Virus record (IMG/VR): IMGVR_UViG_3300032288_004964
Coordinates: 186,001 to 250,000 of that record
DNA length: 64,000 bases
Reading direction: 5' to 3' (one strand)
Part shown: piece by piece, positions 42,387-64,000 of the stretch
Numbering within the stretch: position 1 is the first letter of the stretch
How the letters are laid out: every line of letters begins with the position of its first letter
Made by a program: the position numbers and the translations under genes
The notes under the pieces: model-generated
What the model was told of the DNA's origin: nothing
What the model saw: only the letters and a program-made list of their open reading frames with translations
The model's database searches: none

Positions 42387-45300
42387 TATCTAGTTTCTTG
42401 ATTTGCTGGGCTAGCTGTCTTTCTAACAACTACCTGACTTCTGTTAATGATAAATTTAATGGAAAATTGGAATGCTTTATTATCAGCTTCATTTTCTAAG
42501 AAAAATTTCACTTTTTTAATATGTTTAATTGTGCTTCTAGTTGAATTTAAATCAATGAATTCATAATTCAATCCAGAATTAGTAGGATCAAGAGAATTCA
42601 TTTTAAAGTATATGTTTATTGGAACTAAAATAGCTTTATTATCACCACCATTTACTGTTTTTACTTTTTCTGTATTTGTTTCAGTTAAATCCTCTAAAGT
42701 TGGAGTAACTGGATGAATAGTAGTTAATAGCTTACTTTGAGAAGTAGCAGTAGGAACAGTATCTATCCACTTTTTAGTATCTAATAATGATTTATTATTA
42801 CCAACAAATGATAATAAAGTTGTTTCATTATACCCAACATTAAATTCACTTGATGCTAAAACCGAAGTAATAGAATTTGAATTATTAGTAACAAACGCAT
42901 TTCCTATATTTTCAGATAGCTTTGTAACTATTGTCTGTGAATCATTTACAGTTTCAAAGTTAACATTCCATAAGAATTGATTGTTTAACTGAGATCTTGT
43001 TTGACCAGTTGCTGCTGAAGCTAATAACTCATCTTTATCATTTACCCAGAACACTTGAGGTGCTCCGGTGTTATACATATCTGAGTTTTGAACATAACTT
43101 CTATTTGAAAGTAGACCTAATGGTGAATCAATAGAGTTATTTCTAACCTTAACAACAAAATCTTTAATAACATAAATATTATTAGCATAAATTCTTCCTG
43201 CTTGAACTTGCCTAGATAGAGCAGATCCAACAAATTTATCTAAATAGTCTTCACATTCTATATTGAATGTAACTTCAGCTCCATTATCAACAATAAATTC
43301 TTTATTGTTTCTAAGAATAACAACTTGAAGCTCACCTTTAACTCTTTTAATTTTATCTTCTAATGAAGAAATTCTATCCTGAAGAGACTTTAAATATGTT
43401 AATAGATCAAGTGATACACCATTAGCATCTTTGAATCCTGATAAAATAGCATCAGCCGTATGATTATATGTTTTATTACCAACAACTATTGTTCCGGATA
43501 AATGCTGATCTAATCCTTTAGCAGAAAGTTCAGCATTTAATCCAGTTTTTAATTCTTCTTTTGATGCTTCCTTTAGAATAAAGTCATTCTCATTTAAAAC
43601 ATTGTTTAAATCATCTGGAAACTGAACAGTTAATACATCAGACCAATCTGATTCAACTGCTGATTCAGGCCAACCAACTTCAGAGATAGATTTAATTCTA
43701 ATTTCAACCTTTTCATTTGACTGAATTGGAATATCTATCTGATTAATATTTGGAGTATCAGCATTTTCAATATCTTCTATTTGCCAAGTATAAGTTCCAT
43801 TAGTTGTATTATAAACTCTTTTTCTGGCATCTGTTTTAAATTCAGTCCAGTTAGAAAAAACTGCTGTTTGGTTTTTACCAGCTAAACTTTTTACTTTGAA
43901 AGTTTCAGTAGGAGTTTCTTTACCATCTTTAGAAATATATCTATATTGAACTCTAAACTGAACAATTTCTTGCGGAGCGGTTCCTTTAGTTATAATAGCC
44001 TCTGGTATGTTCCAAAAGCCTCTAACAGAGAATTTTGGTTGTATTTTAGTAAGAGAAGGTGATTTTGAAAGATCAATAATCTCTTGAGTAATAGTAGATA
44101 ATAATTTAGATTTACTTTCTCTTTGCTTTGTAAGTAAATCTTTTTCTAAATCTATTTGTTTTCTTTCAGAATCTGAGGTAAATCTTTGTACTTTAGATTT
44201 TTTATTCTTAGACTCAATTGATTCATTAATCTGAGTAACTTCAGACTTCAAAGACATCATTAAATTATGTTTTGTCTTTATTAAATTTGAATCAGGAGAA
44301 TCTGTTAAATGTTTATTAATCTGAACAACTTTAAAGTTTTCAGAGTTTAATGTTGGAGCAACTGGTGTACCAGCTAATTTATTAGGAGTTTTCTTTGCTA
44401 CCAAATCTTGTAGAACTTCACCATAATCATATACATAATCAATATAATATTGTTCCATAGTAAGACCATTACTATTATCAGTAGATGATAGTCTTAAATC
44501 ATTAGTCCAAAATGCAGTACCACCACTCCAATTCTTAGCCATTAAATTAGTTTCAGCATTCATTGGTTTTAAGAAAATAACATTTCTCTCATTATAACCA
44601 ACACTTACTTTAACAGTTTTTGTATAAACAACCGGTGAGTATATTTTCAAAGTACCTAATCCTACTGGAATTGGCTGATTTCCTTCTACTCTTTCAAATC
44701 TAACTCTGTAGTTGGATTCAACTTTAGAAAGTTCAATAATTTTATATCTTGTATTAGATTGTGCTGTATTTATAATTACTTCATCATTAAGAGATAATTG
44801 TCTTACTTCATTTGTATCAGTAACTAAATAGTCAAATGTATTTAAATAATACCAAAGTTTTCTATTTAATTTATCTTCTTCTGTACCTAATACACTAAAA
44901 ACACCATCATATAATAATTGATTAGGATCTAAATCAAAAACTTGCTCATCATAATTTGGATTTGTTGGATTTACTAACCCAGCGGTTGTGGAATACCAAT
45001 CAACAAAGTCATCAATATTAATATTAGATTTACCACTAAATTTTGTATTAAAACTATTAAGTGCTGACTGACCAAGTGGTGTTAGATTACCAGCTGCATC
45101 TACTGCAAAATCAACAATATATCTTCTAACTAAACATTTTCTAACATTATCTTCAACTTTACCAGAAAGATCTATCTCAACAGAGAGCATTGGGTTCATT
45201 AAACCATCAAATATCCAGTTTTTGCTTGATTTAAATGTAGTTAAAGTTTGAAGTTCAGCAATAGGAGAAGGTTCTTTATTAAGATCAATAGTAATAACCT

Positions 45301-45926: not shown

Positions 45927-47795
45927 ATGATAGAACAATTAAAAGAACAGATTATTAAAGCCAATGATGCTTATCGCTCTGGTAAATCTATAATTTCAGA
46001 TGTTAAATATGACCAACTAATTGAAGAATTATCTTTACTATCACCTGATGATGAACTACTTACAAAAGTAGGACATGTGGTTGTTGATGAAACTCGTAAG
46101 AGTAAACTACCTATTGAAATGGCTTCAATGAATAAAATTAAGTCTATGGGAGACATAGATAATTGGACTCGTCTTAAAGGAATAAATCAAAATGAATTAG
46201 TTATAATGACACCTAAGTTTGATGGTCTTTCTCTTTGTGTTAAAGAAGATGATAATGAAGCTTGGACTCGTGGTGATGGTGAATTTGGTCAAAAATCTGA
46301 CGAACACTATAAACTAATTCAAAATCACTTATATGAAGATGGATTTACTGATGATACAACCGATCCATTTGCACCCATTGAATTCAAATATACTTATGGT
46401 GAGGTGATGATGCCTAAGAAAGTATTCATTGATAAATATTCTACTGACTTTGCTAATCCAAGAAACTTGGTAGCTGGTCTTATTAATAATAAAGAAGCTA
46501 CAAATCCTTTATCAGATTGTCAGTATATTAAATATGGTGGAATGCCTTCCAAAGCTTTTAATCCAAAAACTAAAAAAGAAATACTTGATACTCTTAACAA
46601 TGGCCAGAGAAGTAAAGTAAACTATCATATCTGTAAAGTTTCTGAATTAACAGAAGAACTACTAATCGGATTATTCCATAAGTGGTCTGTTGATTTTGAA
46701 ATTGATGGAATTATTATTGAAATTAATGACTTAACATTACAAAATAAATTAGGTCGCGAAACCTCATCAAACAATCCTGTTTGGGCTCGCGCTTTCAAAC
46801 ATCCTTCTTTTGAACAATCTGCTGAAACAGATGTTATTGGAATCTCTTGGAATATTTCTAAACAAGGTTTATTAAAACCAACTCTACATATTAATCCTGT
46901 TAAATTAGACGGTGTTACAGTGTCTAATGTTACTGGTAACAATGCTCGTTTTGTAAAAGACTTAGGACTTGGTGTAGGTGCTAAAGTAGTTGTAAAACGC
47001 TCAGGAATGGTTATTCCAATCATTGCTGATGTTATCAAACCCGTTGATTTTGTTCAACCTACTATTGATGGAGTTGAAATAGATTGGAATGAGGCTGGCA
47101 TTGAGTTAATTACTTTAACAGAAACTGACGATCAAAAATTAAAAAAGATTGTTGCTTTCTTTGAAATCTTAGAAGCAGACAATGTGTCAGAAGGAGTTAT
47201 TACTCAACTATGGGATGCTGGTTATAAAACAATAAAAGATATTTTAAGTCTAAAAACTTCTGACTTAGAAAAAATTGACAGATTTGGTAAGCGTAAGGCT
47301 CAAATTGTTTTTGATTCAATTCAAAAATCTGTTAGTAATGTTCAGTTGTCTAAACTACAACACGCTACTGGTATCTTCAAAGGATTAGGATCTAAGAAAT
47401 TAGTTCTTTTAGAAGATTTCAAAACTAAACCAACTATTGACCAAGTAATGTCAATTGAAGGATTTGCTGAAGTATCTGCTAAATCATATATTGATTCATA
47501 TGATGTATTCTTTGATTTTATCAAAGATTTGCCTGTCACAATTGTAGAAAAAGTAGAAGCTGCAAAAGTTGGCACGGATCTTGATGGTAAACAATTTGTA
47601 TTTACTGGAGTAAGACGTGCTGATTTAGAATCAGTTATTGAATCCCGTGGTGGTAAGATTGGTAGTGGTGTATCTAAAAATACAACATATTTAGTTATGA
47701 AAGCAGTAGGTAGTGGTTCTTCTAAAGAGAAGAAGGCTATTGAATTGGGAGTACAAGTTATTACAGTTGAACAATTAGAAAAATTATTATCATGA
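45927..47795 (+). CDS. ligA: NAD-dependent DNA ligase
   Basis: Adenylation motif PKFDG, TRGDGEFG, NPRNLVAG, EIDGIII, OB fold (RSGMVIP), HhH motifs, C-terminal BRCT (GKQFVFTG...GVSKNT); no Zn-finger cysteines. Confidence 0.92.
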   Translation: MIEQLKEQIIKANDAYRSGKSIISDVKYDQLIEELSLLSPDDELLTKVGHVVVDETRKSKLPIEMASMNKIKSMGDIDNWTRLKGINQNELVIMTPKFDGLSLCVKEDDNEAWTRGDGEFGQKSDEHYKLIQNHLYEDGFTDDTTDPFAPIEFKYTYGEVMMPKKVFIDKYSTDFANPRNLVAGLINNKEATNPLSDCQYIKYGGMPSKAFNPKTKKEILDTLNNGQRSKVNYHICKVSELTEELLIGLFHKWSVDFEIDGIIIEINDLTLQNKLGRETSSNNPVWARAFKHPSFEQSAETDVIGISWNISKQGLLKPTLHINPVKLDGVTVSNVTGNNARFVKDLGLGVGAKVVVKRSGMVIPIIADVIKPVDFVQPTIDGVEIDWNEAGIELITLTETDDQKLKKIVAFFEILEADNVSEGVITQLWDAGYKTIKDILSLKTSDLEKIDRFGKRKAQIVFDSIQKSVSNVQLSKLQHATGIFKGLGSKKLVLLEDFKTKPTIDQVMSIEGFAEVSAKSYIDSYDVFFDFIKDLPVTIVEKVEAAKVGTDLDGKQFVFTGVRRADLESVIESRGGKIGSGVSKNTTYLVMKAVGSGSSKEKKAIELGVQVITVEQLEKLLS

Positions 47796-49606: not shown

Positions 49607-49739
49607 AGGAGTTGAAACTTTTTTATATATATTTTATATAAATTATTCCAATAAACGGAAATTAACGGCAATAAAAAGAAATTAAAAACCCAAATTGATA
49701 GCTAATAAAGGCAGTCAACAAAAAAATAAATGGCAATAT

Positions 49740-50348
49740 ATGCAATCTAAAGCAAAGACAACAATTCTATTCTCTGAACAAGAGAAAGTTTTCAAAGAAA
49801 GAACAGGAAAAGACTTTAACAGTCTTTACACAAAGTACTACCCTAAATTAGTTTACTTCACTTCTAAAATCTGTAATGATACTCAAAAAGCTGAAGACAT
49901 TTCAACAGAATCATTTTTATCAGCATTTGATAAAATTGAAAAATATGAAAAAGACAAATCACAATTTTCTACTTGGCTTTTTACAATAGCCAAAAACTTA
50001 GCACTTCAAGAAATTAAAATTCAAAAGAAAACAACTTCTATGGATCTTGAATATGATGAGGAAGGAACAACTATGAAAGACTTTATTCAAGAAGATGAAG
50101 ACTATTCATATCTACATGAGGTACATGCTAAAAAGGCAGATATCATGAAAAGTAAAATATCTCAATTAAAAAACCCATATAAAAAGGTGATTGAAATGAG
50201 AGAAATTAAAAAGATGTCATATAAAGATATCTCTGATGAATTAAATCTTAATTTATCAACAGTTAAATCACAAATTAGAAACGGAAGAGCTATCCTTATC
50301 AAAGAAACTCAAAAGGAATTTGATGAGATAGATGAAATGTATTTATAA
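49740..50348 (+). CDS. Sigma-70-family (ECF-like) RNA polymerase sigma factor
   Basis: Likely start ATG 49740; region 2 ([16 protein letters not shown]...[11 protein letters not shown]) and region 4 ([24 protein letters not shown]). Confidence 0.85.
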
Positions 50349-50362
50349 ATAATAAATACCTT

Positions 50363-50450
50363 GGAGAAATGGCAGAGTGGTCGATTGCGGCAGTCTTGAA
50401 AACTGTTGAACCGTGAGGTTCCTGGGGTTCGAATCCCTATTTCTCCGCCA
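50363..50450 (+). tRNA. tRNA-Ser(UGA), canonical type II
   Basis: GGAGAAA/TTTCTCC acceptor, CT-TGA-AA loop, long variable arm, TTCGAAT T-loop, G73 and encoded CCA. Confidence 0.95.
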
Positions 50451-50474
50451 AGGTATTTTTTAAACCTAGTAAAA

Positions 50475-51776
50475 ATGAATATAGAATCTTTAGGCAGACA
50501 AGCTATAGACAGGATTAAATCTCAATGGGGTTTACCTAAAAATGGTTTTATCGCCGGTGGGTCAATCGCCAACATTGTTTGGGAATTGGTATCTGGTAAT
50601 AAAGCTATCATTAATGATATTGATGTTTTTGTTTTTGATGGTATTCAAGACGAGTTAGATAAATCTGACAAATCTTCATTATTTAACTATCAAGAAAAAG
50701 AAACCAAATATGGTGAAGATTATACTGGTATGTGTTTCAATACATATACTAAGGACTTTTATTCTATAGTTGAGTCTACTAAAGATGATATATTTAATAT
50801 TGTTAAATACAAATCAAATAGTAAAGATCCTTCTTTAATTATTAAATCATTTGATATTAACTCAACAAGAATTGGATATTCTATCGAGAAAGATGAAATA
50901 TACTGGACTCCTGATTTTGAAGAGTTCTTAAAAACAGGTGAGTTAAAAATCACAAATCTTATGACACCTTCTCATACAGCAGTAAGAATTGCTAAGAAAA
51001 GTAAAGAGTTAAAAGCTAAAATAGACATTTTTGAATTTAAACTTTTACAATATGCGCTTTGCCATGGATTTTCTGATAGAATTAAGTTTAGATTTAAGGA
51101 AAGATATCACCAGATGTATAAAGATAACTTAGATATACTTGATAGTATGTTTTGTTTATCTAGAGATACTGAGGCTGAACAATATGTTAGATCTCAATAT
51201 GGTGATATTACTGAACTTTATTACTTAAGTCCTAAAGTAGAAGATGGTAATCCAGAACTTGAAATTCCTCATTATATTAATACTAGTCCTTCTTTTGGTA
51301 AAATTTTTGGAGAATCAGATAATAATGTTAATATTATAAGTAAGTCTATAGATTTTTTATTTTATATGAGAAATATCTGGGGTAATGAAAATCTTCAAAA
51401 CATTTGGAAAAATGTTTATTACTTCTTTACTGATGTTAATTATATTGATAGAGAGATAAATAATGAGGATTTAGAATTGTTATCAAGGTTTTCACAATAT
51501 GCTCCTAAATCTATTGAGAATCTTAAAGGAATGAAAATATCTGAACAAATTGATATCATTAAAACATTTTTAGATAAATTTAAAGATGATCCTTTAGTTG
51601 CCATTTCCATAATAGAGAAGATTAAAGTAACTAAAGACTTGATATTGGATGATGAAACAACTCTTATTTTAGAATTATCTGTTAGAAAAGAAATTGTAAA
51701 TGATACAAGAAATAAGGTTAGAAGAATTTTGAATAATGAAAATGATAGAAATCAAAACTTTTTAGCAGATTTTTAA
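50475..51776 (+). CDS. Nucleotidyltransferase-superfamily protein (poly(A) polymerase/CCA-enzyme-like head)
   Basis: Likely start ATG 50475; GFIAGGS...NDIDVF and downstream FDIN motifs. Confidence 0.55.
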   Translation: MNIESLGRQAIDRIKSQWGLPKNGFIAGGSIANIVWELVSGNKAIINDIDVFVFDGIQDELDKSDKSSLFNYQEKETKYGEDYTGMCFNTYTKDFYSIVESTKDDIFNIVKYKSNSKDPSLIIKSFDINSTRIGYSIEKDEIYWTPDFEEFLKTGELKITNLMTPSHTAVRIAKKSKELKAKIDIFEFKLLQYALCHGFSDRIKFRFKERYHQMYKDNLDILDSMFCLSRDTEAEQYVRSQYGDITELYYLSPKVEDGNPELEIPHYINTSPSFGKIFGESDNNVNIISKSIDFLFYMRNIWGNENLQNIWKNVYYFFTDVNYIDREINNEDLELLSRFSQYAPKSIENLKGMKISEQIDIIKTFLDKFKDDPLVAISIIEKIKVTKDLILDDETTLILELSVRKEIVNDTRNKVRRILNNENDRNQNFLADF

Positions 51777-58535: not shown

Positions 58536-58643
58536 GAAAAAAAATTAAAAAATATTAGGTAGATATAAAACTTTTATCTATATTTGTATAAAATAAGAAA
58601 AAAATAACAAAAGAGAGAATAATTTTTTAATATATAAGAAATA

Positions 58644-58739
58644 ATGACAACAATTCGCACACATAAACATTTTAGTAAATCGAGTAAGTGGTTTAGTCTC
58701 CACGGGTTCGGTACTAATAGCGTATTGTTTAAATTTTAA
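58644..58739 (+). promoter_or_regulatory. His/Phe/Trp(/Lys)-containing leader peptide MTTIRTHKHFSKSSKWFSLHGFGTNSVLFKF
   Basis: 31-aa ORF after TATATTTG (58579-86) and TAATATATA (58628-36), upstream of a terminator and tRNA-His/Phe/His/Trp. Confidence 0.75.
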
Positions 58740-58774
58740 GTATGATAAAATTATAAATTGACAATATTCAAATT

Positions 58775-58810
58775 AAGTCCGAACTAAAAAGTTCGGACTT
58801 TTTTGTTTTT
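58775..58810 (+). terminator. Intrinsic terminator (attenuator) directly upstream of the first tRNA
   Basis: AAGTCCGAACT-AAAA-AGTTCGGACTT perfect 11-bp stem plus TTTTGTTTTT, 4 nt before tRNA-His. Confidence 0.85.
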
Positions 58811-58814
58811 ATAT

Positions 58815-58906
58815 GGTATCGTTAATGTTAGCGGTTAGTGTTGAGAAATCAACCAGCATATGGCTCTGTGAAAGCCAAGGGATGGATTCGAATTCCATAC
58901 GATACC
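58815..58906 (+). tRNA. tRNA-His(GUG) with G-1 and a hairpin insertion in the D-loop
   Basis: GGTATCGT/ACGATACC, TGGCT-CTGTGAA-AGCCA, ATGGA-TTCGAAT-TCCAT; D-loop contains GTTGA-GAAA-TCAAC. Confidence 0.85.
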
Positions 58907-59185: not shown

Positions 59186-59256
59186 ACGTCATACAGACAA
59201 GGTGTCGGTCAGGTCTCCAAAACCTCGATGGCTGGGTTCGATTCCTGGATGGCGTG
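59186..59256 (+). tRNA. tRNA-Trp(CCA)
   Basis: ACGTCAT/ATGGCGT acceptor, AGGT-CTCCAAA-ACCT, CTGGG-TTCGATT-CCTGG, G73. Confidence 0.85.
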
Positions 59257-59262
59257 CAAAAA

Positions 59263-59307
59263 ATGAAATATAAAAAAATGAAAACTAAAATGAAATATAA
59301 ACGATAG
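59263..59307 (+). promoter_or_regulatory. Lys-rich mini-ORF MKYKKMKTKMKYKR followed by an 11-bp hairpin, upstream of three tRNA-Lys genes
   Basis: 7 AAA codons in 14; stop TAG overlaps GGCAACGGTTC-ATAC-GGATCGTTGCC (59307-59332). Confidence 0.45.
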
Positions 59308-59345
59308 GCAACGGTTCATACGGATCGTTGCCCAAACAAGACAAT

Positions 59346-59427: not shown

Positions 59428-59512
59428 GATCCTGTCGCTTAGCGGCTATAGCAACTGGCTTTTAACCAGTAGAGAGAAATCTCAACCGTGGGTTCGAGTC
59501 CCACCAGGATCA
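59428..59512 (+). tRNA. tRNA-Lys(UUU) with long variable arm
   Basis: GATCCTG/CAGGATC, ACTGG-CTTTTAA-CCAGT, 17-nt variable region A-GAGA-GAAA-TCTC-AACC. Confidence 0.88.
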
Positions 59513-59517
59513 CTAAA

Positions 59518-59598
59518 GCTTTCGTCGCTTAGTGGCTATAGCAACTGGCTCTTAACCAGTCGAGAAATCAACCGTGGGTTCGAGTCCCACCGAAAGCA
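59518..59598 (+). tRNA. tRNA-Lys(CUU) with extended variable arm
   Basis: GCTTTCG/CGAAAGC, ACTGG-CTCTTAA-CCAGT, 13-nt variable region C-GA-GAAA-TC-AACC. Confidence 0.88.
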
Positions 59599-59607
59599 CA
59601 AATATAT

Positions 59608-59737
59608 GGGGAGTTAGCTCAGTGGTAGAGTATATATAACCTCTTTTGAAATTTTACCTCACAAGAGTGTTGATTAAAAGAGTTACTTCGTTTGAATTGA
59701 AATCAAAAGGTCATAGGTTCGAATCCTATACTCCCCG
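59608..59737 (+). tRNA. Interrupted tRNA-like gene of uncertain identity, with a 58-nt insertion between the D-arm and anticodon arm
   Basis: GGGGAGT/ACTCCCC acceptor, GCTC-AGTGGTA-GAGT D-arm, ATAGG-TTCGAAT-CCTAT T-arm, TTTGA-ATTGAAA-TCAAA arm. Confidence 0.6.
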
Positions 59738-59756
59738 CAAAAAAGAAAAATAAATT

Positions 59757-59831
59757 ATGAAAAATATTAATACATCAAAGTCGTCAAGTAGTCGCTCGTC
59801 AAGAATGAGTGAGATTCGATTGTATTCATAA
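59757..59831 (+). promoter_or_regulatory. Ser/Arg-rich leader peptide MKNINTSKSSSSRSSRMSEIRLYS
   Basis: 24 aa with 9 Ser and 3 Arg codons, upstream of a terminator and tRNA-Arg plus three tRNA-Ser. Confidence 0.8.
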
Positions 59832-59850
59832 TAGTCAGAAGATATTTATG

Positions 59851-59888
59851 AAACCCTCGAATCTAATGATTTGAGGGTTTTTTATTTT
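59851..59888 (+). terminator. Intrinsic terminator (attenuator) directly upstream of tRNA-Arg
   Basis: AAACCCTCGAATC-TAAT-GATTTGAGGGTTT 13-bp stem (one G-U) plus TTTATTTT. Confidence 0.85.
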
Positions 59889-59893
59889 AATAT

Positions 59894-59967
59894 GGTTCCA
59901 TCGTTCAACTGGATAGGACACTCGGCTACGAACCGAGAGATTGGGGATTCGAATTCCTCTGGAACTA
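59894..59967 (+). tRNA. tRNA-Arg(ACG)
   Basis: GGTTCCA/TGGAACT, CTCGG-CTACGAA-CCGAG, GGGGA-TTCGAAT-TCCTC. Confidence 0.92.
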
Positions 59968-59972
59968 CAAAA

Positions 59973-60059
59973 GGAAAAGTAACTTAGCCGGCGCTAAGCA
60001 CAGTCTTGAAAACTGCTGGTACCTACGGGTATGGGGATCGACACCTCACTTTTTCGCCA
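59973..60059 (+). tRNA. tRNA-Ser(UGA), atypical (6-bp D-stem, can fold 8/4)
   Basis: GGAAAAGT/ACTTTTTC, CTTAGC-CGGC-GCTAAG, CAGT-CTTGAAA-ACTG, long variable arm, GCCA end. Confidence 0.85.
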
Positions 60060-60062
60060 AAT

Positions 60063-60148
60063 GGAGAGTAATCTAGTCTGGTGACTAGCACCGCCTGCTA
60101 AGCGTGTGGTACGTTTAATCGTATGGAGTTCAATTCTTCTACTCTCCG
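60063..60148 (+). tRNA. tRNA-Ser(GCU), 8/4 cloverleaf
   Basis: GGAGAGTA/TACTCTCC 8-bp acceptor, GGAG-TTCAATT-CTTC 4-bp T-stem, CTAGTC-TGGT-GACTAG D-arm, CT-GCT-AA loop. Confidence 0.85.
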
Positions 60149-60153
60149 CAAAA

Positions 60154-60239
60154 GGAAGATAATCTAGTCTGGTGACTAGCCACGCCTGGAAAGCGTTGGG
60201 TGCGTTCAATCGCATGGGATTCGATTTCTCTATCTTCCG
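60154..60239 (+). tRNA. tRNA-Ser(GGA), 8/4 cloverleaf
   Basis: GGAAGATA/TATCTTCC 8-bp acceptor, GGGA-TTCGATT-TCTC 4-bp T-stem, same D-arm, CT-GGA-AA loop. Confidence 0.85.
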
Positions 60240-60242
60240 CAA

Positions 60243-60539
60243 ATGGTAGCAATAGTTAAAATAAAAATTACATACTTTAGAAAGTCAGCAAGTGCTGAAG
60301 ATGGTAGTATTATTTGGGTTTATAAAACTAAAGATGAATCATTACATAACGGTAGTGGAATAAGTGAATCAGCTTTAGACAGAAGTGGTTATAAATTAAT
60401 GAAATATAATAGTGATTTAGAACAATATGCAATTGACTTATCATTTAATGGTAAAAAAGATATAATTTATTCATCAATTGAAAGTGAAATTAGACCTTTA
60501 TTAAGAAACAAATTATTAACAGAATTATTAGAATATTAA
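60243..60539 (+). CDS. Hypothetical protein with C-terminal RNKLLTELL motif
   Basis: 98 aa starting just after the last tRNA. Confidence 0.5.
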   Translation: MVAIVKIKITYFRKSASAEDGSIIWVYKTKDESLHNGSGISESALDRSGYKLMKYNSDLEQYAIDLSFNGKKDIIYSSIESEIRPLLRNKLLTELLEY

Positions 60540-60958: not shown

Positions 60959-63900
60959 CTAATCATATACTCTTATTTCAATTGATGCTCCCATGAGGCC
61001 GTCAACTAATACATTAAAATTGAAATAAGTAGCTAATAATATTTGAGATGTATAAACTGCCGGTACAACTGTTCTATCAGGTGCTGCAGTATTAGTAATA
61101 AAAACAACACATTTAGTTGGATCAAACAACACATTTGTTGCTTGATAGACACCAGTTGATACATAGTCCCATGTTGGATTAAATCCAAGTGTATTTTTAA
61201 AAACCTGTGTTGTTGTTAATGATGATGTAACACCATATCCATTACCAATTAGATTGGCAACATATACTTTATATCCATTGGATAAATTAGATGATGCTGT
61301 CCAAGTACCAACACCATTAGTATCAGATACTAAAACATAACCATCTGATTGTGTTGTATCTTCTAATCTAAATGCTCCTGATTGTGTAGCATAAACATGC
61401 AATTTAGCAGTAGATGATGCTGTTCCTATACCCACTTGACCATTAAATACATATTTATGTAGAGTACCAGATTCTCCAAAATTAAATTCATTATCTTGTG
61501 TAGTTATAGAATTATATCCAATTGCCCAAGAGTTATTATGTGATGACACAGCATTTCTACCTATTGCTACACCTCTAACACTTGAGTTAACAGTCGATGA
61601 TCTACCAATTGCTATACCATCTGTTGTACCTGAAACAATATTTGAAAATAAACCAACCGCTATACCATCATCAGATGAGACTACACCAGACCCAATAGCA
61701 ATAGCTCCACCATTTCCAGAGTCATTAAGTGTATTACCATTACCTATTGATATATTAGGTGCTCCAAATCCTTGACTCATCTTAATAGCTGTATAAGATC
61801 CAATATTATATGAACTAGAAAGTCCTGATAATTTAATATTACCACTTACTTCTAATTTTTCGGAAGGAGTTGTGGTTCCAATTCCAACATTTGAGCCAGT
61901 TACATAAATAGAACTTGTTGATGAAAGTGTTGTAGATGATGTATAATAAGGCACATAATTAGTACTTCCTGATAATGAAGTGCTTGATGTTGCTATCAAT
62001 AATCCATCAACACTTACTGCTACAAGACAAGAAACTGATGATGTCATAGATGTTATAATGATATCATTAGCATGAGCCGTATATTGTCTACTTGCGGTTA
62101 TGTTAGATCCTAAAATAGAAGATCCTGTCATACCATTTGTAGTATTATTACATCCACCAATTATAGAACCAAATGGTGCATTTGAAGTATTACAATAACC
62201 CCCACCTATAGCAGAATAAGATGAGCAATATCCAGAAATTGTATTTTGTTGACCACCTCCTATTGTTGAAAATGATGAATTAGTACCTGATATTGTATTT
62301 GCTATACCACCTCCTATTGTTGAATTAATTGAAGAATACCCAGAGATTGTATTTGAATTACCACCATTTATAGTTGAGTGATACGAATAATAACCTGAGA
62401 TTGTATTTTGTTGACCACCACCTATATTTGAGTTATTTGAATATTGACCACTTATTGAGTTTAATGATCCACCATTTATAGTTGAGTTGTATGAGTTGAA
62501 TCCAGATATTGTATTTTGTTGACCACCTCCTACTGTTGAACTATATGAATTAAATCCAGATATTGTATTTAATGTACCACCGCTTATAGTTGATCTATAT
62601 GAATTTGTACCAGATATTACGTTTTGAACACCTCCGCTTATAGTTGAGCAATGTGAATAAGTACCACATATTTTGTTTAAGCGTCCGCCTCCTATTGTTG
62701 AATCTATTGAGCAGTATCCAGATATTTCGTTTTGTCTACCACCAGATATAGTTGATTGATGAGAGAATTGACCTGAGATTGTATTTTGACATCCACCACT
62801 TATAGTTGAAGAGTTACTAGTAGCTCCAGAGATAATATTACAAGAACCTCCACTTATTGTTGAATAATATGAAATATTTCCAGAGATTAAATTACAATAT
62901 CCACCGCTTATAGTTGAAATAGTAGAAGTATTACCAGAGATTGTATTAAGTTTACCACCACCTATAAATGATTGATATGAGTAAAGACCAGAAACTATAT
63001 TATAATAACCACCACTTATAGTTGAAAAACATGAATTGGTACCAGAAATTGAATTAGATCTACCACCGCTTATAGTTGAATATTCCGAATTAATTCCAGA
63101 TATTATATTGGCGTTTCCTCCTCCTATTGCTGAAAAAAATGAGTTAGAACCAGAGATTGTATTACAAGAACCTCCTCCTATTGTCGAATTATCTGAATTA
63201 GGACCAGATATTGTGTTCGTCTGTCCACCGGATATAGTAGAGTAATATGAATTAATTCCAGAAATTGTATTATCACATCCACCACTTATAGTTGATTGAT
63301 ATGAATTTGTACCTGAAATTTTATTTAATTGACCACCAGATATAGTGGAATAATAAGAAGATTTACCAGAGATTGTATTAGTACTACCACCACCTATAGC
63401 TGAGTAATATGAACATTCTCCAGAGATTGTATTTGTTAGACCACCACTTATTGTAGATCTATATGAATTTGTACCTGAAATTATATTATTATAACCCCCA
63501 CCTATAGTAGAAGAATCTGAATTATATCCTGATATTGTATTAGTACCACCACCACTTATAGTTGATTGATATGAATAACAACCAGAGATTGTATTAGTAC
63601 TACCACCACTTATAGTTGATTTTTGTGAGTAAAAACCAGAGATTGTATTAGTACTACCACCACTTATAGTTGATTTTTGTGAATAATATCCAGATATTGT
63701 ATTTTGCTGACCACCTCCTATAGTTGATAAGCACGCACTGTAGTATGATGAAACTGTATTACAACATCCACCACTTATAGTTGATAAACATGAACTCTCT
63801 ATACAATTACAATAACCACCACTTATAGTTGAACAATTTGAGCTAGATATATAATTAAAATAACCACCACTTATAGTTGATCTATATGAATAAGAGCAGA

Positions 63901-64000
63901 TCATATTTGCTTCACCACCACTTATAGTTGATAAGCATGAGTCAGTTATACAATTATTCCAACCGCCGCCTATATTAGAGTAATTTGATGCTCTTATTGT
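60959..64000 (-). CDS. Tail fibre/adhesin-like protein with many STISGGxxNxISG repeats and a YadA-head-like segment; 5' end truncated by the window
   Basis: Frame remains open from 63904 to 64000; about 17-18-aa tandem repeats, AIAIG/GIAVG/GIAIG/GVAIG motifs, NVGIGTTTPSEKLEV motif. Confidence 0.75.
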   Translation of the reverse strand, partial: TIRASNYSNIGGGWNNCITDSCLSTISGGEANMICSYSYRSTISGGYFNYISSSNCSTISGGYCNCIESSCLSTISGGCCNTVSSYYSACLSTIGGGQQNTISGYYSQKSTISGGSTNTISGFYSQKSTISGGSTNTISGCYSYQSTISGGGTNTISGYNSDSSTIGGGYNNIISGTNSYRSTISGGLTNTISGECSYYSAIGGGSTNTISGKSSYYSTISGGQLNKISGTNSYQSTISGGCDNTISGINSYYSTISGGQTNTISGPNSDNSTIGGGSCNTISGSNSFFSAIGGGNANIISGINSEYSTISGGRSNSISGTNSCFSTISGGYYNIVSGLYSYQSFIGGGKLNTISGNTSTISTISGGYCNLISGNISYYSTISGGSCNIISGATSNSSTISGGCQNTISGQFSHQSTISGGRQNEISGYCSIDSTIGGGRLNKICGTYSHCSTISGGVQNVISGTNSYRSTISGGTLNTISGFNSYSSTVGGGQQNTISGFNSYNSTINGGSLNSISGQYSNNSNIGGGQQNTISGYYSYHSTINGGNSNTISGYSSINSTIGGGIANTISGTNSSFSTIGGGQQNTISGYCSSYSAIGGGYCNTSNAPFGSIIGGCNNTTNGMTGSSILGSNITASRQYTAHANDIIITSMTSSVSCLVAVSVDGLLIATSSTSLSGSTNYVPYYTSSTTLSSTSSIYVTGSNVGIGTTTPSEKLEVSGNIKLSGLSSSYNIGSYTAIKMSQGFGAPNISIGNGNTLNDSGNGGAIAIGSGVVSSDDGIAVGLFSNIVSGTTDGIAIGRSSTVNSSVRGVAIGRNAVSSHNNSWAIGYNSITTQDNEFNFGESGTLHKYVFNGQVGIGTASSTAKLHVYATQSGAFRLEDTTQSDGYVLVSDTNGVGTWTASSNLSNGYKVYVANLIGNGYGVTSSLTTTQVFKNTLGFNPTWDYVSTGVYQATNVLFDPTKCVVFITNTAAPDRTVVPAVYTSQILLATYFNFNVLVDGLMGASIEIRVYD

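Follow-up and report, generated by a model that had tools for sequence, protein, structure and literature searches.

Content and organization of the locus

The window is the whole stretch of DNA that was analysed (64,000 nucleotides; positions 186,001 to 250,000 of IMG/VR record IMGVR_UViG_3300032288_004964; identical to part of a 385-kb IMG/VR contig). It is 28.7% GC and looks like phage DNA. A tRNA cluster lies on the + strand at about 58.8-60.24 kb. Within this cluster, a short Ser/Arg-rich ORF is followed by an intrinsic terminator and then by one tRNA-Arg and three tRNA-Ser genes (Table 1). The nearest annotated relatives are LR745206.1 (634,780 bp) and LR756502.1 (642,428 bp), both uncultured phages. 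These lengths match two of the four largest genomes (634, 636, 642 and 735 kb) reported in Al-Shayeb et al. 2020 (PMC7162821), where genomes over 634 kb are assigned to the 'Mahaphage' clade and Bacteroidetes hosts are predicted. An alternative genetic code was considered, as related megaphages recode TAG, and was rejected for this window: the ORFs are long under code 11, and the long ORFs end in TAA 29, TAG 3 and TGA 3 times. In any case, the leader ends in TAA followed by TAG.

Table 1. Features of the Ser/Arg unit and of a sister unit in the window (a)
Coordinates	Strand	Feature	Characteristics
58644..58804	+	Sister unit A	His/Phe/Trp-rich leader (58644-58739; MTTIRTHKHFSKSSKWFSLHGFGTNSVLFKF) and terminator (58775-58804), followed by tRNA-His, -Phe, -His and -Trp
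59741..59756	+	Spacer between the preceding tRNA-like gene and the leader ATG	A-rich, unstructured; presumed translation-initiation region; no Shine-Dalgarno sequence; no promoter fits in these 16 nt
59757..59831	+	Leader ORF	24 codons (9 Ser, 3 Arg) plus TAA (59829-31); encodes MKNINTSKSSSSRSSRMSEIRLYS
59775..59801	+	Regulatory Ser/Arg codon run (b)	Codons 7-15: TCA AAG TCG TCA AGT AGT CGC TCG TCA
59792..59812	+	Hairpin P1, predicted	TCGCTCGT (59792-99), loop CAAGA, ATGAGTGA (59805-12); candidate transcription-pause hairpin; abuts the antiterminator
59812..59831	+	5′ strand of the antiterminator (c)	H1 AGATTCGA (59812-19), GU (59822-23), H2 TTCATAA (59825-31); H2 includes the stop codon
59846..59864	+	3′ strand of the antiterminator (c)	TTATGAA (59846-52), AC (59853-54), TCGAATCT (59857-64); overlaps the 5′ arm of the terminator
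59850..59888	+	Intrinsic terminator	5′ arm 59850-63, loop TAAT 59864-67, 3′ arm 59868-81 (14-pair stem), T-run 59878-88; −19.9 kcal/mol
59894..59967	+	tRNA-Arg (ACG)	Starts 5 nt after the T-run; ARAGORN; Rfam 55.4 bits
59973..60060	+	tRNA-Ser (UGA)	Long variable arm, atypical T-loop; anticodon loop CUUGAAA; Rfam 40.9 bits, below the gathering score; not called by ARAGORN
60062..60148	+	tRNA-Ser (GCU)	Anticodon loop CUGCUAA; Rfam 51.3 bits; not called by ARAGORN
60154..60238	+	tRNA-Ser (GGA)	Anticodon loop CUGGAAA; Rfam 50 bits; not called by ARAGORN
a Coordinates are those of the window. b The regulatory role is inferred. c Predicted by folding of the nascent RNA. H1, GU-AC and H2 designate the successive helices.

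The ORF, the terminator and the 8-bp complement between H1 and the terminator 5′ arm were found exactly as in the original prediction. So were the codon counts: TCA x4, TCG x2, AGT x3, CGC, CGA and AGA. TCA/TCG are read by tRNA-Ser(UGA), AGT by tRNA-Ser(GCU) and CGC/CGA by tRNA-Arg(ACG). In the long ORFs of the window, AGA makes up 86% of Arg codons, CGC 2% and CGA 1%, and TCG is 1% of Ser codons; the codons of the leader are therefore unusual here. Three points of the original prediction were corrected or completed. A third tRNA-Ser gene (GGA) lies downstream. The AGA codon is not conserved (most homologues have AAA or AAG at this column) and is not read by any downstream tRNA. The 8-bp helix is only the base of a longer predicted antiterminator, which contains the stop codon.

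The terminator hairpin, followed by TTTTTTATTTT, is the strongest terminator-like site in the region. There is no room for a promoter between the T-run and tRNA-Arg, so the four tRNA genes can be expressed only by readthrough of the terminator.

A chance ORF next to an ordinary constitutive terminator, or an RNA-processing hairpin, was considered. Short ORFs are frequent in AT-rich DNA (208 ORFs of 20-45 codons in the six frames of the window). However, this ORF is the richest of the 208 in Ser+Arg (50%, against 30% for the next; binomial P=5e-6), and a constitutive terminator 5 nt before four tRNA genes without promoter would silence them. This explanation is also contradicted by the comparative data given below and is hardly tenable.

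Conservation of the leader

A degenerate DNA pattern derived from the end of the leader detected 24 distinct homologues in viral and metagenome contigs. One more copy (L035) was found through a neighbouring protein and is therefore independent of the search pattern. Three other hits from the viral scan (L007, L009 and L010) have no ORF, terminator or tRNA context and were discarded as chance hits. A scan of bacterial and archaeal genomes with the leader pattern gave no match, so that no host or prophage copy is available to give context.

All 25 copies keep an ATG-to-TAA frame, the Ser/Arg run and the terminator. The ORF has 24-34 codons; indels are multiples of 3, including a 27-nt insert. 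The middle is always a Ser run interrupted by Arg, and AGT-CGC is invariant. Ser is kept whereas the codon family switches between TCN and AGY at the same alignment column (TCA in 16 and AGT in 8 sequences), which indicates selection for Ser codons and not for nucleotides. Arg inside the run is always CGC, with an extra CGT in four sequences. Homologues also use TCT/TCC, read by tRNA-Ser(GGA). From AGT-CGC to the stop there are exactly 13 codons in all 24 homologues, and the spacing from the last Ser codon to H1 is a fixed 13 nt; indels occur only upstream of this block or in the antiterminator and terminator loops.

Downstream, tRNA-Arg(ACG) plus Ser tRNAs are always found; the tRNA starts 4-15 nt after the T-run in nearly all homologues. 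Some copies have their own promoter of the form TAnnTTTGTA, which appears to correspond to the −7 box of Bacteroidota promoters. Others, as in the window, directly follow a tRNA. In the window, the unit has no promoter of its own and lies downstream of another gate.

Alternative RNA structures

A MAFFT alignment misaligns terminator arms of different register. Per-sequence folds and a shorter alignment were therefore used. The terminator is canonical in all 24 homologues (−15 to −20 kcal/mol). When the RNA is folded only up to the terminator loop, i.e. before the 3′ arm is made, all 24 give the same long imperfect hairpin (−12.5 to −21 kcal/mol). In the window, this putative antiterminator of roughly 17 bp is the MFE and centroid structure (−18.2 kcal/mol; z=−4.6 against dinucleotide shuffles; 0 of 200 shuffles as stable) and is nearly as stable as the terminator.

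RNAalifold recovers H1 and H2. The H1 pair 10/70 is G-C in 16, A-U in 5 and G-U in 3 sequences, without any mismatch; the A-to-G change also switches Ile to Val in the peptide. Overall, 97.6% of cells are paired, against 21-45% in slid registers, and the covariation score exceeds all 500 shuffles. A leader pairs better with its own terminator arm than with permuted arms (−9.7 against −9.0 kcal/mol; p=0.0008). Covariation within the family is nevertheless thin, as the homologues are close: H1 has one fully compensatory pair and H2 shows only wobble changes. Hairpin P1 (8 bp) is predicted in all 24 homologues (−6.7 to −11.4 kcal/mol) with a T-A to A-T compensatory change. It carries the invariant AGT-CGC-TCG codons and may be a pause site, which is an inference.

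A promoter hidden in the conserved spacer (AGATATTTATGAAA, 59840-59853) could start transcripts inside the terminator 5′ arm and express the tRNAs independently of the leader. The spacer motif is conserved and loosely resembles the TAnnTTTG −7 box. However, it lacks the TTTG core that every recognisable promoter in these loci has (TAcaTTTGTA, TAtaTTTGTA). Variants with a 1-nt deletion or with TTGTGG keep the H2 pairing but do not keep a promoter match, and the conservation of the motif is fully explained as the 3′ strand of H2. This possibility was rejected as very improbable.

Sister units

Scanning all loci for an ORF followed by a terminator and a tRNA revealed sister units that have unrelated sequences but the same topology. 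Each is enriched in the codons read by the tRNAs that follow it. His/Phe/Trp leaders include that of unit A. In this unit, the antiterminator covaries between genomes: GTTCGG with CCGAAC in the window, and ATTCGA with TCGAAT in L002 (another genome). Glu/Tyr leaders, for example MNTITNIASYESYYEEGNLVRRNNYVVM, are followed by tRNA-Glu and -Tyr. Ile/Gly/Ala leaders include that of L023 (another locus), in which ATA x3, GGA x2, GGG, GGC and GCG x2 are followed by tRNAs whose anticodon loops read UAU, UCC and UGC. In a permutation of five leaders against five tRNA sets, the true assignment ranks first of 120. The neighbouring Lys-leader unit has a hairpin without a T-run and could not be explained by the same mechanism; the design is thus not uniform.

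As a control, 6 or more 5′-arm bases paired upstream in the nascent fold were found in 42 of 43 leader units but also in 23 of 59 (39%) ordinary terminators of the same loci. Pairing alone is therefore weak evidence; the recurrence, the placement of the stop codon and the fixed spacing are the strong part.

The leaders share an N-terminus (MKT/MTT-I-x-N), which suggests duplication followed by re-addressing. The ORF could alternatively encode a functional Ser/Arg-rich micropeptide, the hairpin being a leaky terminator that ends its mRNA and the tRNAs being made by constitutive leak-through. The N-terminal (MKTI.N) and C-terminal (SE[IV]RLYS) residues are indeed conserved at the amino-acid level. 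However, the C-terminal codons form the antiterminator strand, which explains their conservation. The sister leaders share only the N-terminus and differ exactly in the residues that match their tRNAs. A Pfam scan of leader peptides C and A gave zero families at E<=10. Nothing explains why a peptide gene would sit 5 nt upstream of tRNA genes in four separate contexts. This reading is considered very unlikely.

Proposed mechanism

The sequence-level predictions of a leader-peptide attenuator concerning the ORF, the codons, the terminator and the antiterminator hold, which supports the original prediction that a ribosome stalled in the Ser/Arg run favours antitermination and a ribosome reaching the stop codon favours termination. 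On computational evidence only, the unit is most likely a ribosome-mediated transcription attenuator that gates tRNA-Arg(ACG) and three tRNA-Ser genes of the phage. Translation of the ORF, ribosome footprints, and the direction and size of the response are inferred.

In the proposed mechanism, RNA polymerase arrives from upstream and a ribosome loads on the A-rich start region. If the aminoacyl-tRNAs reading TCA/TCG, AGT and CGC are plentiful, the ribosome runs on to TAA. Assuming a boundary about +12 nt from the first base of the A-site codon, it then covers about 59812-59841, i.e. the whole 5′ strand of the antiterminator and none of the terminator. The segment 59846-64 pairs with 59868-81 and transcription stops at the T-run. 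If one of these tRNAs is scarce, the ribosome stalls inside codons 7-15. With the last Ser codon (59799-801) in the A site, it ends at about 59811, one base before H1. The antiterminator forms first, sequesters the terminator 5′ arm, and the polymerase reads through into the four tRNA genes. As the output is the sensed molecule itself, the circuit would be a direct homeostat for tRNA supply. The unit would be one of at least four paralogous, codon-addressed gates that split the megaphage tRNA array into sub-operons. Extra tRNA would not help under true amino-acid starvation; the relevant signal is therefore probably tRNA abundance (for example host tRNA loss or a codon mismatch), which is inferred. 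As the phage rarely uses CGC, CGA or TCG, why it needs tRNA-Arg(ACG) is unclear.

The antiterminator is the predicted nascent fold even without a ribosome, and no anti-antiterminator competes with it. Termination would therefore require translation, unlike in the trp leader, and readthrough is the predicted default whenever ribosomes lag. The unit could thus be a general sensor of translation capacity, switching on the tRNA genes when translation as a whole falters without responding specifically to Ser or Arg tRNAs. This is unlikely: four or more leader classes are each enriched in a different set of codons matching the tRNAs immediately downstream, Ser is maintained through TCN/AGY switches, and rare codons (CGC, TCG) are used. 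A general sensor needs none of this.

A broader hypothesis, possible but tentative, is that the whole array is a set of codon-addressed feedback modules (His/Phe/Trp, Lys, Ser/Arg, Glu/Tyr, Ile/Gly/Ala). The phage would measure, codon family by codon family, whether the infected cell can still decode, and would replace only the missing tRNAs, for example after a host anticodon nuclease attack, after host tRNA decay, or because of a codon-usage mismatch. This would be the first known case of tRNA genes under ribosome-mediated attenuation and a built-in counter-measure to tRNA-targeting defence.

Why phages carry tRNA genes and how these genes are controlled is still debated, the main proposals being codon-usage compensation and replacement of tRNAs destroyed by host defences. 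A leader-peptide gate would show that the phage actively measures decoding capacity for specific codons and responds by making the matching tRNAs. It would extend attenuation to tRNA genes, to Bacteroidota-type promoters without Shine-Dalgarno sequences, and to a modular architecture in which paralogous leaders were re-addressed by changing a few codons. The set of naturally re-addressed leaders is also a ready-made parts list for codon-specific or tRNA-specific biosensors.

Comparison with known systems

The switch mechanism is known; the target, the carrier and the modular organization appear to be new. tRNA clusters of T4 and of other large phages are arrays transcribed as polycistronic precursors. 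To our knowledge, none is described as gated by leader peptides, and full-text searches found no report of tRNA genes under such attenuation in phages or in cells, although an older precedent cannot be excluded. The paper describing the closest relatives contains neither 'attenuat' nor 'leader' (PMC7162821).

No Rfam leader or T-box family was found at gathering score in the window. At E<=1 in 59590-60260, no T-box match was found; the best sub-threshold leader hit is His_leader (RF00514; 28 bits against a gathering score of 49), which was treated, like STnc150 and BTnc005, as chance or generic terminator similarity. T-box riboswitches share the regulatory logic proposed here, i.e. a terminator/antiterminator choice that reports the status of a specific tRNA. 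However, a T-box binds uncharged tRNA directly, through a specifier codon and the T-box bulge, and needs no translation, whereas a conserved ORF, presumably translated, is found here.

Leader-peptide attenuators of enterobacterial amino-acid operons (trpL, hisL, leuL, pheL; multivalent thrL and ilvL) also have a short ORF with a run of regulatory codons, an intrinsic terminator, and a mutually exclusive antiterminator that overlaps the terminator 5′ arm. In these systems, a ribosome at the stop codon blocks the antiterminator and a stalled ribosome permits it, as proposed here. Two amino acids would be sensed in one leader, as in thrL and ilvL. Here, the genes presumed to be regulated are tRNAs and not biosynthetic enzymes, and the element is carried by a phage. 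P1 does not compete with the antiterminator, so that no 'superattenuation' state is predicted. The pheST-himA attenuator (pheM leader) of E. coli is a leader-peptide attenuation applied to a component of the translation apparatus and responding to the level of charged tRNA. It regulates an aminoacyl-tRNA synthetase, not tRNA genes, and is a single unit, not a modular set.

Features found in and around the tRNA cluster and in related loci

Locus a	Coordinates	Feature
Window	50363-50450	Isolated tRNA-Ser(UGA)
Window	58579-58804	Sister attenuator A
Window	58579-86	TAtaTTTG promoter box of attenuator A
Window	58644-58739	His/Phe/Trp-rich leader of attenuator A
Window	58775-58804	Terminator of attenuator A
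Window	58806-58906 and 59187-59258	Two tRNA-like genes, His(GUG)-like and Trp(CCA)-like
Window b	59263-59333	Lys-rich mini-ORF unit
Window	59428-59513 and 59518-59599	Two of the three tRNA-Lys genes (anticodons UUU and CUU)
Window	59607-59740	tRNA-like gene (anticodon UGA)
Window	60959-63904 (- strand)	981-aa ORF
L002	4422-5141	Class I Trp/Tyr-type aminoacyl-tRNA synthetase gene
L036 c	45030-45174 and 46082-46216	Glu/Tyr and Ile/Gly/Ala leader-terminator units

a L numbers refer to related loci. L002, the 642-kb relative. L036, LR745206.1. b Also found in L001, L002, L004, L008, L013, L014, L017, L020, L028, L030 and L035. c Equivalents are found in L023 and L016/L017.

Additional genes of the tRNA cluster and its surroundings

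The tRNA-like gene with the UGA anticodon has a normal acceptor stem, D-arm and T-arm. About 50 nt are inserted between the D-arm and an anticodon stem-loop whose loop reads AUUGAAA. Only its 3′ part is matched by Rfam (30.6 bits), and the gene is not called by ARAGORN. It could be either a tRNA with an unusual insertion or intron, or a decayed gene. Homologous 3′ ends precede the leader in L014 and L021. The His(GUG)-like and Trp(CCA)-like genes were read by eye and are missed by ARAGORN and by Rfam at gathering score. The former has a long insertion in the D-arm region. The 118 nt between tRNA-His (59068) and the Trp-like gene are unassigned. The two listed tRNA-Lys genes are 82-86 nt long and apparently have a long extra arm, which is unusual for tRNA-Lys. 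Relatives in L001 and L002 show the same feature.

The isolated tRNA-Ser lies 8.5 kb from the cluster. It abuts the end of ORF 49695-50348 and overlaps ORF 50406-51776. No leader-terminator unit was seen in front of it. The 981-aa ORF consists mostly of about 30 tandem copies of a roughly 18-residue STISGG..NTISG..S repeat, with a non-repetitive C-terminal part. It has no Pfam match and probably encodes a fibre or surface protein. In L002, the synthetase gene (239 aa; Pfam PF00579, E=4e-38) and two small ORFs are inserted inside the tRNA array, between the Lys tRNAs and the Ser/Arg leader.

Other leader units

The Lys-rich mini-ORF (MKYKKMKTKMKYKR, followed by a stop codon; 7 Lys in 14 codons) lies directly upstream of three tRNA-Lys genes. 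A stable hairpin (-14 to -20 kcal/mol) starts 0-1 nt after its stop codon. The hairpin sequence differs freely between genomes, and the hairpin is followed by an A-rich tail, never by a T-run. The codon-to-tRNA logic is the same as in the Ser/Arg unit, but the switch, whose mechanism is unexplained, cannot be an ordinary intrinsic terminator.

The Glu/Tyr and Ile/Gly/Ala units lie in front of the matching tRNAs in the relatives; the window ends before the corresponding region, if it has one. Sister attenuator A is followed by tRNA-His, -Phe, -His and -Trp. It has the same antiterminator topology as the Ser/Arg unit with an unrelated sequence, and its pairing covaries between the window and L002.
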